A stretch of DNA of 33,000 nt, taken from assembly GCA_964036045.1 (NCBI GenBank), contig OZ038378.1, forward strand, positions 184,450,001 through 184,483,000. Reading direction: 5' to 3'. The position numbers and the translations under genes are program-made. This DNA is from Eutreptiella sp. 'Long Island Sound 2002' (Eukaryota; Protista; Euglenida). Each line of letters starts with the position of its first letter. Within the stretch, counting starts at the first letter, position 1. Positions 1 to 7,539 of this stretch are shown here, piece by piece. The notes below the pieces were generated by a model. The model was not told the DNA's origin. It made no database searches and saw only the letters and a program-made list of their open reading frames with translations.

Positions 1-2218
1 TGCATCATTTGCATGGCACCATTCGATCTCTGTATGTCAGTGTGTATTTAAGAGCCTTGCGCGACGTACAGCAAGCAACAAATCGGTCATAAATTCTGCG
101 TAGTATGCGGCGGTAATTTGTTCGTTGGCGATGGTGTCTATCCCGGGGGGGGGGGGGTCACTTGGCAACGGTTCCCCCAGGGGTGGAGGGGAACCGTCAT
201 CCCTGGGGGGGGATGGACATGGGGGGGGGGGGAAGGTACAACTCACCGCCGTTGGGGGTAGGGGGAGGTGTATAAGCGTTATTATTGCCCTGTCACAGCG
301 GGCCAGGAGGGGGAGGGGTGGGAAATGAATATCAGTCCCCCCCCCCTCCCCCCGTCGACGCAAGCCAATTTTCCGCCATCCCTTCGCCCACACCGGCCAA
401 GAAATGGATCATCCAACGGCAACACACAGTCCCGTTCAAGGGCATGCACCAAATCTTGTGGCTTGCTCCATGGCACGCGTCACATGGCTTGAATGCAATG
501 GCTAGGGCAATGTCCGCTAGGACGGCATGGGAACACGGCTGTTACCTCCATAGAACACGACCGGCCGCAGTGTCCCTTGTGTCGCCTACACCCCTGCATG
601 CCCCAACCGAAGCTGTGTTGCGACAACAAGTGAGGTGCACCCCAAAGGCGCATGCTAGACGGGGCAAAGAGGTTGAGCCTTCCGACTTGTGGGCTTCCGT
701 GCGCCATGCCTAACGCACCATTTGTCACCACTGAGATACTATACAAGGGCATGGTTGGTGCGCTATTTGGCCAGCGACCTACAAGACTCCCTGAATTTCC
801 CCCCTTGCCCAGCAGGTCTCACAGTATGTGGCCCAATCCTGGTTCTAGCACTGCAAGACCGAGATGCTGCACGATGCCCTCCGCAACGGATTGAAACTGG
901 GCAATGATCTCTTCTAGCAACACCATACCTCCGTTGCGGCCCTCAACTGTGTTGGCTCTAGCCTATGGTGTCAGCAAAACAACGCCACGTGTACCAGGCG
1001 GAACGCTACTACCTAACTACCTCACGTGCACTCTATAGGTAACACACACGGCATCTTGGGCAATGCCCCTCGCTTGGGAGACGGTGTGGCATGTATCGCG
1101 GCAACCGAGAGTCACCTACCAAACATCACATCATCATCCCCTCTATGTGCAACAGAGAGCATCATACAGTGTACCACATGAACTATGGGTCGGAGCCCTA
1201 TGCCATGGTCTTGCCAAGGATCCAATGAATCACGTGAGTCTGATGCCCGCTTTCCGAGAACTATCTTCAGAACTCTACTTCAAGTTGAGTCCCAAAAAAA
1301 AAAAACAAGATCCAAGACACGAGAAGGACCCCAAGTAGACCTGACCGTCGCCTCTGCGCAGGCGTTGTGTTAGGTGCTCCCACCAAGTTTGCTAAAATAG
1401 AGGTGTTGGAATCTACCGGTCTAATGCACTATGTGAATGTGTAACATGCTGTGCACATCGAAAATCTGCGTTGATTTTTCATTGTTGTGTGCCAATTGAC
1501 TGCCCTCCTATGCGATCTGACACCCATTATCACCATTTTATGGTCTGATTTTATGTAGACGATTGATAGTACCGATTGATAGTACCTCTGTGGAATGTTT
1601 GATGTTTGTTGGCATCACAATGGCAGCCGCTGTGGCTTTCCATGGCGTGGGAGTGTTGTTATGTCTCAGTGGCAGGCTTGACATTGTTGGCCCAAGTGGA
1701 AGCGCGGATTCCTCCCTGCGCCCTTGGAATGTTCCACGTGGCAAATTTTGTGTCTACTGTGTTGTTCTGTTGTTATTCATTGGAGGCTTCTGGATGATTG
1801 CTGTTCATTCCTGGAGGCTTCTGGATGAAAGCGGACTTATTAGGCTTACATTAGAACAGCGAAAAACCATAGGACAAGCCCCCCCCCCACCCCTTCGACC
1901 CCCTCAATGTTGTGACATTTGGTCCTGGGCAAAATGCAGAAAATTTTTTCTCCGGTGCCTTTGGCGCTCATCTGGGGGGACATATGCATTCTCTCACTGG
2001 TCATCAGGGTGGGTCTCATCCTAGGTGCCTTGTTTGCATGTCTTTTCCCTTTGCTCAGGACTTCAGTTGGCCTTGCTCCTTGTTCATTGCCTGCGACCTT
2101 GCCCACCCACAACCCTCCAAAACCCCTCCCTCCTCTCTTCTAATGGTAGACTGGTGGTGGCGCCCGAGGTTCCGCTTGCTCGCGTCTGTTTATTTCTTTT
2201 AACCCCCATTGTGTGCAG

Positions 2219-4300
2219 TCCTGCATGACGCCATGAAGCGGCATCGACAGCCATCGATTGCTGATGCCTTGAGACCTCATCGCCGCCTGCAGCGGTACAT
2301 CGAAGTGCTGGACCCCGACGGATGCAACGACATTCACAATGTTGACCAGACCCTCATCGACTCCAAGGTGGAGTTTGTGCCCCATAGGCAGGCCATCAAA
2401 CGCCTGCTGCATCAGCTTTGGCTTGGGCATGCAGAGCCGGAACAGAGTGTAGTGTCCCCATCGTCGATGTCGATGGCGCATGAGCATGTGGTCACCCACG
2501 CCAACGCCCGGGACCTGCCGGCTCTGGTGGCCCACGGCGACCGCACCTGGCACCCGAGGCGGGTGCGGCGCGAGGCGCTCCTCATCGGCGTGGCGGCGTT
2601 CCGGAAGTTCGTGCCGCTGCAGAACGCCGCACGCGGGCCTCACATTCTGGAGGCCGTGTTCCAGTCGCTGGGCTACGACCACACGGAGGTGCTCTGCAGC
2701 CCGACGAGGCAGGCCATCCTGCGGGCCGTCCAAGTGGCGCGGCAGCGGCTGTCCCCCGCCGACGTGCTGTGCGTTTACATCTGCACTCACGTCTGCTACT
2801 CCGGGGGGGAACAGCGGCTGGTACCCGCAGACGGGCTGCCGGACGACCCCGGTACGTTGCTGGCCGTCCCGGAGCTGCAGTCCGCGATATGCCCGGAGCC
2901 GGGCTGCCGCGGGGTCCTGGTGTGCGACGCGCACTGGCCCGACGCGACCCGCCTCCGGGTCCCCTGCGTCGAGGGGTTCACGCTGCTGACCCCGCACCTG
3001 CTGGACTACGCCGCCGCGCCCGCCGCCGGATACTTCCCGGCGTCCCTCAGTCAGGCCGTCCTGGCGCTGCTGAGCCAAGGCAGGAACCCGATTACCCTCG
3101 TGGACATTGTGGCCGAGGTATGTCGGCGGTCCCCGCTCTGCTGCATGCGGGTGTTCGAGGACCGGAAGGCGTCGCTGCTGGTGCCGCTGGTGCACGTGCG
3201 GCGCCCCGCGGGGGACCTGCAGTGGAAGTTCGGCAGCGCCTTCTTCGTGCCGACAGTGCACCGGTCCGTCGGGCTGGAGGAGGTGCTGAGCTTCGCGCGG
3301 GGCATCCCAGACCCGACCAGCAAGGCCGTGTCCGTGAAGGAGTCCAAGGCCCCGATGGTTGTGTGGCACGCGCGGCTCGCGGCCCACTGGGACCCCGAGT
3401 ACCGTGAGTCGATGGTCGCGAACTTCTCCGAGAAGCTGCAGAACTTCTGCGCGGTCTCCGGCGTCCGGGGGCCCGCCGCGGTGGAGCGGGTGGAGGAGGG
3501 CGGGATCCCAGGCTCCATCGTGCTGACCGTCCGCAGCACCGCCGACGTGTTCCACTGCGCGTCGGACTACTACGGCAAGGGGCGGCTGTTCTGCATGCAC
3601 AAGATGCTGCATGAGCCCGTGAAGAGCGGCGATCTGTACTTCCTCAGCGCCGTGGGCGACATCCAGGTGATCCCCTCTGCCCTGAATCTGCACCATCACA
3701 ATCTAAATCGTGTGCCTGCTGCAGCAGGGCAAGAGGTTGGGGCAAATCCCGCAGGATCAGAACTGACGTTGGTCATACAAATGCTCACGTACAAGTGCAG
3801 AATGCAGGAGAAATTCAATTGCTGTCGGCCCTTCGCTGATACGGATTCGGAGCCCTCACCCCCCGTCCATTTTGGGGCAAGCGTGGGCACGAATATGATG
3901 TCTCACGCTCTGCTTTTGTTCTGAACGATCGAACACCCACGAGTGGACACTCCATACCCGCGCACTGCCTCATCGCCGCCTGGCGGCACACGATTCGGAA
4001 TATCCACGTCGTCGCACGGCTGCCGCAGTGCCAACGACGTGCGTACGTCGCACCAAACGACCAGCGATCCAGTTTGGACAGCGACAAACCATGGTCATGC
4101 TCAAGCATCCAGACTTTGTTTCGCAGGATGAGATGTTTCTTTCGGCGGGTGTTCTTGACTTTGCCGGGGTGTCGTCCAAGTTTTCAATTCTGTCGGAGGT
4201 CCATTCGGTTGAGCAGATGCGTGCGGTGTTCTGGGGTTCCAGTCCCATGCTGCTGGTGCACCCCAGGGACAAATTGGATGAGCTCTTGGAGAAAGTTTAG
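2219..4300 (+). CDS. Spliced gene, 5' end unresolved: SAM-like domain, caspase-like (peptidase C14 fold) domain lacking the catalytic Cys, and a C-terminal domain. Exons 2219-3666 and 4127-4300
   Basis: Acceptor TGTGCAG| precedes 2219. Donor CAG|GTGATC at 3666/3667 (phase 0) joins acceptor TTTCGCAG|GAT at 4126/4127 (phase 0), which reads to TAG at 4298-4300. The segment REALLIGV..F..L.NA......L...F..LGY...VL.SPTR..I..A......L.P.DVL.VY..TH......RLVPADG...VLVCDAH matches the caspase/metacaspase p20 pattern. Strong GC3 bias from about 2460 to 3690. Confidence 0.75.
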
Positions 4301-4808
4301 AAAACCTTGCGTCTGATCACGCCTGTTGCACAGCTTGATATCATTTTGTTCTCTCCGTCTTCTGCGATGGATAGTGTGTCCGTACCTCAACCAACAATTT
4401 CTGCCGTCGAATTCTCAGGATGTGCACCCATTTCCAAAATCAAGGACCATCCCAGGCTGGGTCGGTGACTCTGCATGAGAGAGCCATGAAACACCTGCCA
4501 ATGGGCAAAGAAGGAGGAAGACAACGGGGACTGTTTCAGGGCCGGGGGTCAGCTCAGCACCTCCTTGATCTCCTCCTTCCCTTTTGTCCTCACGTTTCAT
4601 CGAGATTTGTATGTGCGACCATCGTTACAATGTTTGGATGTAGCCCGGACTGAGGCCACGGCTTAGTGCCGAATTTTACCGATACTGTGGGGGGGATGGG
4701 TGGGTGGGTCAGAGGCCAAAGGAAAAATTGTGTGGCTAAAATCGACCTGCAATTTCGGGCCCCTATGATGAATTTATTTCCTGGCGCAAAATTTATCTGG
4801 GTTTATGT

Positions 4809-4836
4809 GGGTGGGTGGGTGGGTGGGTGGGTGGGT
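4809..4836 (+). repeat. (GGGT)7 microsatellite, potential G-quadruplex
   Basis: Seven perfect GGGT units read directly from the sequence, followed by a 14-nt C run at 4867-4880. Confidence 0.9.
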
Positions 4837-5013
4837 CAGGCGGAGGAGCTCAGGCTGCTATTACAACCCCCCCCCCCCCCTGGTAACGCTAAGCCGTGGC
4901 CTGCCCAAAATACAGATCCCAACCCCTCCAACCATCCACCGGTCTCTTACGGTAAGCTACCGTGCACCGCCACAGCACCGGGTGTAGGTTGTTCATCCCT
5001 CGTGTGTTTGCAG

Positions 5014-7539
5014 GGCTTTCTGGACTGGGAGGAGTGCTTCCAGTCCCAGGGCCCGCTAGAGGAGGCGCACCAGTCGGCCATGCGGGGCCCCGTGCGGGGG
5101 ATCTGGATGCACCTCATGAGCCAGCCCCTGCACCACGACGGGCCCGAGCAGTGCCATGACTCCGCGCGGGGGTACGGCTTCGGCTACGGCACCGGCGGCC
5201 CCGGCCCGCAGAGGCCGGTGCGGCCCGTCACGCGCCCCATGCGCCCGTACGAGCACGGGCCCGAGCGCGGCAGTGCGAGGGATGGGGGGTCCGTCCTGCA
5301 GCGGACGGCTGCCCACAGCCCCGGGAGGGTCCTTGATGTCCCTCCTCGATCGCGACCGCTCGGACACCAGCAGCAGAGGCTTCGAGTGGAGGGCATCGCA
5401 CAGCGCCGGCAGAAGAATGTGTTCCACCCGATCATCCCGGTGCGGGCGTACCCTTATGGGGCCCGCCACGACGCGCCTGACCGCCCCGGTGGGTATTCCC
5501 GTGATGCGTCGCGGTCGCCGAGGCGGGGGGGCACCAAACGGCAGAGTTGGATTGCCGAGGGGCAGCCGCGCCGCGCGCGCCCCGCCCCGCCGCACGCCGC
5601 GGGGCGCGCGCGGCGCGGAGGCTTCTGGGAGGAGGCCATGCGCACGCGGCGCGGCCCCTCCGCGTATTCTTTGCACGCGGACGCCGACGTCATCAACATC
5701 GAGTCGTCGGAAAACGACGAGCGGAGGGAGCCCAGCTGTGACTCGCACGGCTCCAACAGCGCGCTGCACGAGGGGTCGGACTGGGACGCGCGGGACTACG
5801 ACAACGACGCGGACGTCGAGCAGCCGCAGGGCTTTGAAGGGCCGCAGGACGACCTCAACGACAGCGACGGCGGGGACGGGGGCGGAGCCCGCCCCCTGAA
5901 GCGGTTCCGGGAGAGTTCTCAGGACCTCAGCCCGCGGGGCGCGGAGATGCAGAGAGGTCTGCAGCGCCTGAGCGTGACCAGCCCCGACCTCATGGACACG
6001 GAAGATGGCGTTGTTGCCGCCGAGGGAGGCGACCCCGCGGTACCGACAGGGGACCGCCCGTCCGGGGCCGCGGCAGTGCAGGCGCCCGAGGCCCCTTTGG
6101 GGGGGGGCCGCGGTGGCGGTGGGGGCGGGGCGGAGGGGGGCCCGGAGCGCATGGACGAGGACGGCATCGAGGACCAGATCCGGGCGTTGGAGGCGCAGGT
6201 GAACTCCGCGAACGACGAGTACGAGAGCTCCCGCAGCCCGGCCGCGCGGCGCCGGCAGGCGCAGGATCACGAGCAGGAGCGCGAGATCGAGCGGGAGCGC
6301 CTGCGGCTGCAGCGGGAGAAGGAGCAGGCGGCGGCCGTGCGGGAGGCCCAGCGCCGGCGGGAGCAGGAGCGGAGCGAAGAGAAGCGGCGGCGAAAGCGGG
6401 AGAAGAAGCGGGGGCAGCTCGCGGAGATGCTGCGAGCGGAGGCCCCGGGCGTCGACGTGGAGGAGCTGGTGGGCGCCGCAGAGAAGTCGATGGAGGCGGG
6501 CACGACGATGAGAGCCGCGGTCAGCGCGGCGCTGCAGGCGATTCAGGTCCAGGCGGCCCTGCAAAAGAAGCAGCTGCAGGCCCGCGAGGCCATGCGGAGG
6601 GAGGGGGGGCAGGTGCTGGCGGCGGCGGAGGGCCCGGCCCCCGCGCCGGCGCCGGGCGGCGGCGGCGCCTGCGACACGCCCGGACGCGCGGTGCCCCCGG
6701 AGCAGCCGCCGCGGGCGATCGACTCGCTGAGCGACAGCAACGGCAACGGCGATGTCTGCGTGCCCCTCGGCGTCGAGGACGTGCGGGAGCGACTGACGCG
6801 GCTGTCTGCCCTGGGGCCGGCGGAGGATCTCGACGGGGCCATCGACGCGCTCGTCGAGGACATCAGAGTGTCGCGCGCGCCCGAAGAGGGCGTAGTCCAG
6901 GCCCTCGTCGAGCACTTCCAGCAGCAGGACTACCCGGAGGCCGAGGCGGGCCGGCTGGCCGGCTGGCGCCTGATCGCGAACCTGCTGGTGGTCCTGCCCC
7001 TGTCGTACAGCAAGGCGCTGCGGGGGCACATCTGCAAGCTGGTGCGCGACCACCTCCCGCGGGACGACGGCGGCCTCCAGATCCTGCGCGGCTGGGCCCC
7101 GGCGGCCGACGGACCGGGGGTGTGGCCGGTGGAGGTTTGGAGCCGGATGGAGTCGTTGTACGTCGGCCTGCGGGTCCAGGGGATGCTGAAGGAGGACCCC
7201 GCCCCGAAGGACCTGGTCCACAAGATGAAGCAGGAGGCGGACCGAGTGGCCGGGCGGGTGGCCTGCGAGCGGCAGATCCTGCAGGCGGTCCAGGACGCGC
7301 TGGAGGAGGCGCCCCACGGGCGGCGCCTGCTGCTGTGGCAGGTCGTCGACATTCTGGTGCCGCACGGGCCGGTGTACGCGCAGGGGTTTGGCGACCGGAT
7401 CGACCAGCTGCTGCTCAGTTATCCGGCCGGCGGGGGTCCGTTCCGGGCCCTGGTCCAGCAGTGGGTGGACGACAACGTGTTCTCCCATGCGACGGCCGTT
7501 CTGCGGCGGTTCCTGACGGGGGCCACGGGGGAGCGGTAG
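5014..7539 (+). CDS. Long exon encoding an Arg/Gly/Pro-rich disordered region, an acidic region, an Arg/Glu-rich coiled coil, a CUE/UBA-like helical motif and two tandem CID (CTD-interacting domain)-like domains
   Basis: Uninterrupted GC-rich frame within ORF 4666-7539. Acceptor GTGTGTTTGCAG| at 5013/5014; first in-frame ATG at 5080; TAG at 7537-7539. The C-terminal segment QILQAVQDALEEAPHGRRLLLWQVVDIL..HGPVYAQGF..RI..LLLSY....FRALVQQWVDDNVF follows the Pcf11/SCAF CID pattern, and a second diverged copy precedes it. The ORF part upstream of 5014 runs through microsatellite/poly-C and is probably not coding in this frame. Confidence 0.8.
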   Translation, partial: GFLDWEECFQSQGPLEEAHQSAMRGPVRGIWMHLMSQPLHHDGPEQCHDSARGYGFGYGTGGPGPQRPVRPVTRPMRPYEHGPERGSARDGGSVLQRTAAHSPGRVLDVPPRSRPLGHQQQRLRVEGIAQRRQKNVFHPIIPVRAYPYGARHDAPDRPGGYSRDASRSPRRGGTKRQSWIAEGQPRRARPAPPHAAGRARRGGFWEEAMRTRRGPSAYSLHADADVINIESSENDERREPSCDSHGSNSALHEGSDWDARDYDNDADVEQPQGFEGPQDDLNDSDGGDGGGARPLKRFRESSQDLSPRGAEMQRGLQRLSVTSPDLMDTEDGVVAAEGGDPAVPTGDRPSGAAAVQAPEAPLGGGRGGGGGGAEGGPERMDEDGIEDQIRALEAQVNSANDEYESSRSPAARRRQAQDHEQEREIERERLRLQREKEQAAAVREAQRRREQERSEEKRRRKREKKRGQLAEMLRAEAPGVDVEELVGAAEKSMEAGTTMRAAVSAALQAIQVQAALQKKQLQAREAMRREGGQVLAAAEGPAPAPAPGGGGACDTPGRAVPPEQPPRAIDSLSDSNGNGDVCVPLGVEDVRERLTRLSALGPAEDLDGAIDALVEDIRVSRAPEEGVVQALVEHFQQQDYPEAEAGRLAGWRLIANLLVVLPLSYSKALRGHICKLVRDHLPRDDGGLQILRGWAPAADGPGVWPVEVWSRMESLYVGLRVQGMLKEDPAPKDLVHKMKQEADRVAGRVACERQILQAVQDALEEAPHGRRLLLWQVVDILVPHGPVYAQGFGDRIDQLLLSYPAGGGPFRALVQQWVDDNVFSHATAVLRRFLTGATGER

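Follow-up and report, generated by a model that had tools for sequence, protein, structure and literature searches.

A divergent bacterial-type caspase-fold protein with His in place of the nucleophile Cys, encoded in a euglenid nuclear genome

Introduction

Caspase-fold proteins without a catalytic nucleophile, such as cFLIP and MCA4 of Trypanosoma brucei, act by binding or regulation, and the trypanosomes belong to the Euglenozoa, as does Euglena. Here we describe a gene in a 33,000-nucleotide stretch of euglenid nuclear DNA (contig OZ038378.1, positions 184,450,001 to 184,483,000; the whole stretch is called the window and coordinates refer to it), whose main exon encodes a caspase-fold domain with His at the position of the nucleophile Cys. 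In cyanobacterial pseudo-orthocaspases, Tyr and Ser replace the His-Cys dyad (PMC6426788). TRADD-N domains are known from bacteria and animals and often adjoin caspases (Kaur et al. 2021, PMC8195603); they have an RRM-like beta-alpha-beta-beta-alpha-beta fold with a motif of a tiny residue plus Ser ('uS') in the beta2-beta3 turn, and the cyanobacterial consensus reads IEKIEK-GS-IKLILEGSqEGLerLe.LfrSGeL (PMC8195603).

The gene probably encodes a protein of ~480 residues with a complete caspase fold that has lost its Cys and would serve as a non-catalytic binder or regulator with orphan flanks. An earlier note on this DNA, made from the sequence alone, had proposed instead that the exon joins SAM, pseudo-caspase and TRADD-N segments in one death or immunity scaffold.

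Results

The features that carry the caspase assignment are as follows; A1 is an alignment of the query with 25 relatives, which are caspases.

2219 to 3666, + strand: main coding exon, about 483 codons in the frame of the open reading frame (ORF) 2209-3924, placed by splice motifs, G+C content at third codon positions (GC3) and codon log-odds
2551 to 3180, + strand: caspase/hemoglobinase-fold (Peptidase_C14-like) domain, exon residues ~112-321
2788 to 2790, + strand: catalytic-position His (H191, 'CTHV'), codon CAC, an invariant column in A1
2926 to 2934, + strand: 'DAH' replacing the family 'DAC' (residues 237-239, with H239 at the nucleophile Cys), codons GAC GCG CAC, from A1

The middle segment of the exon is a genuine caspase-fold (Peptidase_C14) domain, far beyond chance. 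An exhaustive phmmer search of 1.8 billion representative proteins returned 28 non-self matches (E 2e-6 to 1e-3), 27 of them on residues 97-300, and PF00656 was found in 18 of the 20 matches scanned, its profile position 1-2 aligning to query residues 115-118 (window ~2566). The top match, P0002, is a tandem-repeat protein that covers residues 154-207 only and is without PF00656; the closest relative, P0003 (from an ENA contig), is 34% identical over 140 residues and seemingly lacks the nucleophile Cys too. When a profile was built from the phmmer matches without the query, the query scored 109 bits, compared with only 12.7 bits against a profile of the C14 paralogues of its own genome, in which at least 36 PF00656 matches were found (an assembly of 2.28 Gb in 2317 contigs, with the window at 184.45 Mb of contig 1). 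The partner domains of the phmmer relatives are bacterial (PG_binding_1, bacterial SH3, Sel1, FGE-sulfatase and TPR), and the one gene neighbourhood inspected is ordinary bacterial. The fold has its nearest counterparts in bacterial C14 proteins of the orthocaspase/metacaspase-like kind.

Structure and feature searches gave the same family. In an independent ESM feature search, caspase clusters ranked first (0.87) and the ten best Pfam-bearing matches were all caspase-family. AlphaFold2 (AF2) with A1 reproduced the strands and helices of the caspase fold completely and in order, with a predicted local distance difference test (pLDDT) of 90-97 for residues 120-240 and 70-80 for residues 270-310, and Foldseek returned MALT1 paracaspase, yeast Yca1, CED-3 and caspases 7 and 9 (E 1e-8 to 1e-6, probability 1.00). 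Together with the PF00656-bearing relatives and the 109-bit score, these matches bear out the caspase-like domain that the earlier note had placed from ~2569. Sequence searches of Pfam, NCBIfam, PADLOC and PDB with the whole protein and with its three parts were all without match, and a single-sequence AF2 run of the protein was unusable (pLDDT 37).

In A1, the nucleophile Cys is His (2932-2934) and the Gly that normally follows the catalytic His is Val, and because of these two replacements the domain is most likely a catalytically dead pseudo-protease. The pseudo-caspase label of the earlier note thus holds at the sequence level, H191 being kept and DAC changed to DAH. An active protease with a non-canonical site, in which H191 would pair with a nearby Cys (C236, C189 or C194) or a His-His pair would serve, is highly improbable. 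H191 is invariant, and cysteines do lie beside it and two residues before the canonical position, but the C236 column is a core beta-strand position that is hydrophobic in 25 of 25 relatives, the Gly after the His is lost, and the phmmer matches offer no precedent; relatives P0016 and P0022 also lack the nucleophile Cys in A1.

The limits of the exon follow from three further features and from the coding signal around them.

2233 to 2466, + strand: N-terminal extension that begins with the first ATG in frame, coding or 5' leader, holding the SAM-like stretch 2257-2418
2467 to 2475, + strand: two in-frame ATG codons (2467 and 2473), an alternative start; the high-bias block begins at 2461
3725 to 3766, + strand: candidate terminal mini-exon of 13 codons plus TGA, predicted to follow a 58-nt GT-AG intron (3667-3724)

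ORF 2209-3924 (+, 571 residues) is present in the window; judged by splice motifs and codon bias, the exon within it covers about 2219-3666 of the + strand. The candidate acceptor is CAG at 2216-2218 (AG 2217-2218) behind a pyrimidine tract, and the candidate donor is GT at 3667-3668. In-frame GC3 is 0.83-1.00 from ~2479 to 3666 (about 0.93 across 1.2 kb of the exon), 0.55-0.77 in 2209-2478, and 0.25-0.45 right after 3666. A codon log-odds model, trained on the two GC3-rich blocks of the window against its remainder, scored the core at +0.81 bits per codon, 2233-2466 at -0.11 and the read-through tail 3667-3921 at -0.87; the tail looks non-coding. All three segments named in the earlier note were located on this one exon, as it had said.

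The N-terminal segment 2233-2466 (78 residues) is probably coding, because its score of -0.11 (the two alternative frames score -0.84 and -1.36) is equalled by only 0.3-0.7% of non-coding windows. Strong codon bias starts exactly at ATG 2467/2473, which could be the real start, and therefore the 78 residues are probable but uncertain as protein. At the other end, the GC-rich phase past 3666 moves to the frame of the 3725-3766 block, which has a codon log-odds of +0.14, while the alternative frames score -1.0 and -1.5, and a terminal mini-exon is possible there.

A strong coding signal is confined to two + strand blocks of the window, 2461-3684 and 5020-7536. The second (ORF 4666-7539) is GC3-extreme, with G+C content up to 0.75 and the same phase as the exon; its product of ~840 residues is low-complexity, rich in Glu, Arg and Ala, and without Pfam match, and the block may represent either a gene of its own or further exons downstream. 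The reverse-strand ORF 2140-3699 was rejected as a gene, being a shadow of the GC3-rich frame with its third positions off the GC-rich phase.

The host genome is euglenid (Euglena gracilis-type) and the gene nuclear. The 20-mer at the 3' end of the Euglena gracilis spliced leader had 6029 matches in a genome-wide search, against 1 for a control, and because of this abundance the host is assigned to the euglenids, which confirms the guess of a protist-like, euglenid genome made in the earlier note. A dinoflagellate origin was ruled out, the dinoflagellate spliced leader having 0 matches in the genome. The ~6000 copies of the 20-mer are scattered along the chromosomes on both strands and beyond arrays (e.g. 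C1:29492-29511, where C numbers denote contigs of the assembly), and these dispersed copies could be SL-RNA (spliced-leader RNA) genes or retroposed leader-bearing copies. Plastid-type photosystem II reaction-centre ORFs (PF00124) were found at C2317:18530-21455 and also in a nuclear chromosome-scale contig (C25:7700707-7703597), the latter likely a plastid-DNA insertion. Within the window, 1-400, 1780-1830 and 4690-4900 are high-copy repeats, at which contig depth reaches hundreds to thousands compared with 6-38 for unique sequence, and a GGGTGG-type run at 4690-4900 breaks short-read contigs.

It is quite unlikely that the gene is a silent or decaying lineage-specific one, or a chimaera of duplicated fragments, functionless at present. 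RNA runs holding the locus were not found among public runs, and orthologues were not found by word search or phmmer; pieces of the exon of 70-120 bp recur at about ten other loci with 80-91% identity, often in broken frames, and the N-terminal piece has decayed in GC3 relative to a copy on contig C8. An intact frame of 486 codons at the GC3 given above is, however, unexpected for an old pseudogene. Both splice signals at its edges are preserved, and organism B, a second sample, is identical over ~830 bp of the locus (X4 pieces, 0 differences). The recurring pieces fit a genome rich in fragmentary duplications and are no argument for a dead main exon.

The C8 copy (C8:66446348-66446466) is a 119-bp copy of window 2340-2458 with 91% identity; six of the 11 differing sites are synonymous T/C differences with C in the C8 copy. 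Directly upstream of it lies a choline/ethanolamine-kinase-like exon (L002, G000:C8:66444843-66448028, minus 2071-2769).

For the N-terminal segment, the earlier note had read a SAM domain from the residue spacing of 2257-2418. The spacing and register are visible, but Pfam and profile searches do not detect the domain, and we regard SAM as a resemblance, the domain being undemonstrated and not supported. A Pfam scan for PF00536 and PF07647 was empty at E 10. A profile of 22 SAM domains from the genome, which has at least 120 SAM_1 matches, gave the segment 1.9 bits, a score reached by 32 of 2000 shuffles, and local hhalign to the own-genome SAM domains gave a probability of 3% (P 0.015). Global hhalign did align 66 columns in the expected register with a score matched by 1 of 200 shuffles, yet 11 of 170 natural protein windows (6.5%) scored as well. 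AF2 predicts five helices, but with a pLDDT of 50-61 that did not suffice for searching by fold.

A genuine SAM plus caspase architecture is present elsewhere in this genome, in the multi-exon gene L064 (G000:C1:16867000-16876999, minus strand). Its SAM_1 exon (FTQWFKQLKLPQYEAKF..., 34.7 bits) lies 1.8 kb upstream, on the same strand, of C14 exons with RLALVIGNSHYEHY... and 'LLLDACHENK', in which the catalytic Cys is intact. L064 lifts the prior for SAM in the present gene a little. Nearly identical SAM_1 matches at more than 40 places (33.4-33.5 bits; e.g. C3:29154278-29154454 and C5:14385902-14386078), with open frames 121 or 146 residues long, look like a repeated element with a SAM-like ORF.

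The remaining feature is the segment in which the earlier note had seen a TRADD-N signature.

3331 to 3666, + strand: C-terminal region, residues 372-483, without detectable relatives; motif GSIVLTV...YGKGRL at 3511-3588

The earlier note had described the motif accurately, because GS, I+1, L+3, G+22 and L+24 of VERVEEGGIPGSIVLTVRSTADVFHCASDYYGKGRL are spaced equally in the cyanobacterial TRADD-N consensus. G432-S433 precede a hydrophobic strand-like stretch with the published spacing, although the strand prediction is unreliable. The domain, in contrast, fails profile tests that true members pass. Genuine TRADD-N members were collected by way of a psbA-like exon, the cyanobacterial loci it led to and their genomes, in which a 30-nt degenerate pattern (GSI[KR]hxh[EQ]GS) found 8 proteins, two Nostoc linckia proteins of PMC8195603 among them; profile searching extended the set to 18 TRADD-N domains. 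Against the 8-member profile the C-terminus scored -1.3 bits (540 of 5000 shuffles as good), and against the 18-member profile -1.0 bits (176 of 5000). Local hhalign against the 18 domains gave P 0.036 and a probability of 1.4%, with the 27-residue motif alone aligned, compared with P 1e-9 to 1e-21 for distant true members left out of the profile; global hhalign was no better than shuffles (93 of 160).

Other searches agree. PF09034 and PF13820 had no match in the Pfam scan, nor had PF09034 at the locus in the genome search; the C-terminus was without match in NCBIfam, PADLOC and PDB and without usable match in the ESM atlas, gave only noise against five cyanobacterial genomes, and, as residues 330-483, returned only the protein itself in a word search of a 5.8-billion-protein collection. 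In cyanobacteria, PF13820 itself was found mostly in one conserved protein of ~1000 residues, at 14-17 bits. The single-sequence AF2 run put the strands and helices of the C-terminus in beta-alpha-beta-beta-alpha-beta order at pLDDT 45-52; the A1 run loses beta2 and beta3 with pLDDT <50. A TRADD-N domain at the C-terminus is therefore not supported, and even given the motif and the known association with caspases, TRADD-N on its own account is unlikely. Two cyanobacterial ORFs, L194 (G010:C197:2308-5336) and L192, combine a CHAT/caspase-like domain ('HFSGHG...LNACYS') with TRADD-N in the N-to-C order proposed for the present gene.

The three-domain death or immunity scaffold of the earlier note, a polymerising SAM plus pseudo-caspase plus TRADD-N adaptor or switch, is thus very unlikely. 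It draws on the five predicted N-terminal helices, the 66-column SAM alignment that 1 of 200 shuffles matches, the canonical SAM plus caspase gene L064, the TRADD-N-like spacing of the GS turn, I+1, L+3, G+22 and L+24, the published 'uS' motif of the beta2-beta3 turn (PMC8195603), and the existence of bacterial CHAT/caspase plus TRADD-N fusions (L194). Opposed to these are, for SAM, the missing Pfam match, 1.9 bits, the 3% hhalign probability and the 11 of 170 natural windows that do as well, and, for TRADD-N, the missing PF09034, NCBIfam and PADLOC matches, the negative scores of both profiles (-1.3 and -1.0 bits), P 0.036 over 27 columns against 1e-9 to 1e-21 for true members, and a C-terminus with pLDDT <50 whose strands vary between the two AF2 runs. 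Because SAM and TRADD-N are both unsupported, the dead active site is what is left of the case for a polymerising, cFLIP-like scaffold, and the idea of a protist signalling scaffold with SAM and TRADD-N lacks support. The earlier note had also called the architecture undescribed, a claim weakened by L064, in which SAM stands with an active-type caspase, and by the cyanobacterial CHAT plus TRADD-N protein L194.

There is a very slim chance that SAM and TRADD-N domains do form the flanks, in an extremely diverged state, and that the gene is a SAM plus pseudo-caspase plus TRADD-N adaptor. Its TRADD-N would be the first beyond bacteria and animals, probably obtained from bacteria together with the bacterial-type caspase module. 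If true, this would suggest that euglenids have a regulated platform for death or immunity.

Discussion

For the favoured reading, a non-catalytic caspase-fold protein with orphan flanks, the pseudo-caspase domain would keep its substrate-binding or dimerisation surfaces and work by binding. It could regulate the many active C14 proteases that the genome encodes, act as their decoy, or be an adaptor, with the lineage-specific N- and C-terminal regions supplying partners; the own-genome PF00656 matches are candidates for such partners. The flanks are orphan sequence, and their own-genome paralogues were found only as fragments of 44-60 residues.

Several points weigh against this reading. The PF00656 model had no match to the protein even at E 10, and the locus is missing among the own-genome PF00656 matches. 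The AF2 fold leans on the caspase alignment, and the AF2 and Foldseek result is tied to the sequence result because A1 is made of caspases. No orthologue was found, the word search of the 5.8-billion-protein collection returning only the protein itself and phmmer returning none. The public runs that hold the locus are genomic DNA contigs, colinear with the non-coding flanks (e.g. 2031-4718). Three cysteines, C189, C194 and C236, lie near the active site, the dead status is derived from sequence, and the binding or regulatory role is one that we infer.

Read as a divergent bacterial-type pseudo-caspase, the protein adds to a large euglenid C14 repertoire (at least 36 genomic matches). Should it prove to regulate active metacaspases, it would offer an entry point to the control of cell death and stress in euglenids.

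Like L064, the present gene is predicted to have an N-terminal helical module before a C14 domain in one gene. L064, however, has a Pfam-detectable SAM_1, an intact 'DACHEN' and several exons, and shows no specific similarity to it. With cFLIP and MCA4 there is no detectable specific sequence relationship, and the present protein has no DED domains.

With TRADD-N proteins (PMC8195603) it shares, with equal spacing, a GS pair that precedes a putative strand and a putative helix closed by G-x-L, and a caspase-like domain adjoins, as in L194. In contrast to those proteins, its C-terminus fails the profile tests, in which true members stand out by many orders of magnitude, and has no confident RRM-like fold.

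Bacterial orthocaspases and metacaspase-like proteases (PF00656) are the best sequence relatives, with the same fold, a conserved catalytic His and the N-terminal 'ALxIGxxxY...L.N' start in register. Where theirs read 'DAC(R)xxP' with Cys, the present protein reads 'DAHWPD'; identity is ~25-35%, and it is encoded by a spliced euglenid nuclear gene, has orphan flanks and lies beyond the reach of the Pfam model.

A locus closer than the present gene to the pseudo-orthocaspase type is found elsewhere in the genome. L026 (G000:C20:41396748-41397386, minus strand) is a 256-residue bacterial-type C14 ORF that scores 155 bits against the bacterial profile, with 'AGYS' (His to Tyr) and 'LEAARGNPF' (Cys to Ala). 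It seems to be the euglenid equivalent of the pseudo-orthocaspases in cyanobacteria.

Cyanobacterial pseudo-orthocaspases resemble the present protein in having a bacterial-type caspase fold with a disabled dyad. They differ from it in that here the His is kept, the Cys is changed to His and there is no Tyr/Ser pair, and the dyad loss in the present gene arose independently of theirs. Pseudo-caspases, pseudo-orthocaspases and trypanosome pseudo-metacaspases are known already; what is new is a very divergent member in which the nucleophile Cys has become His.

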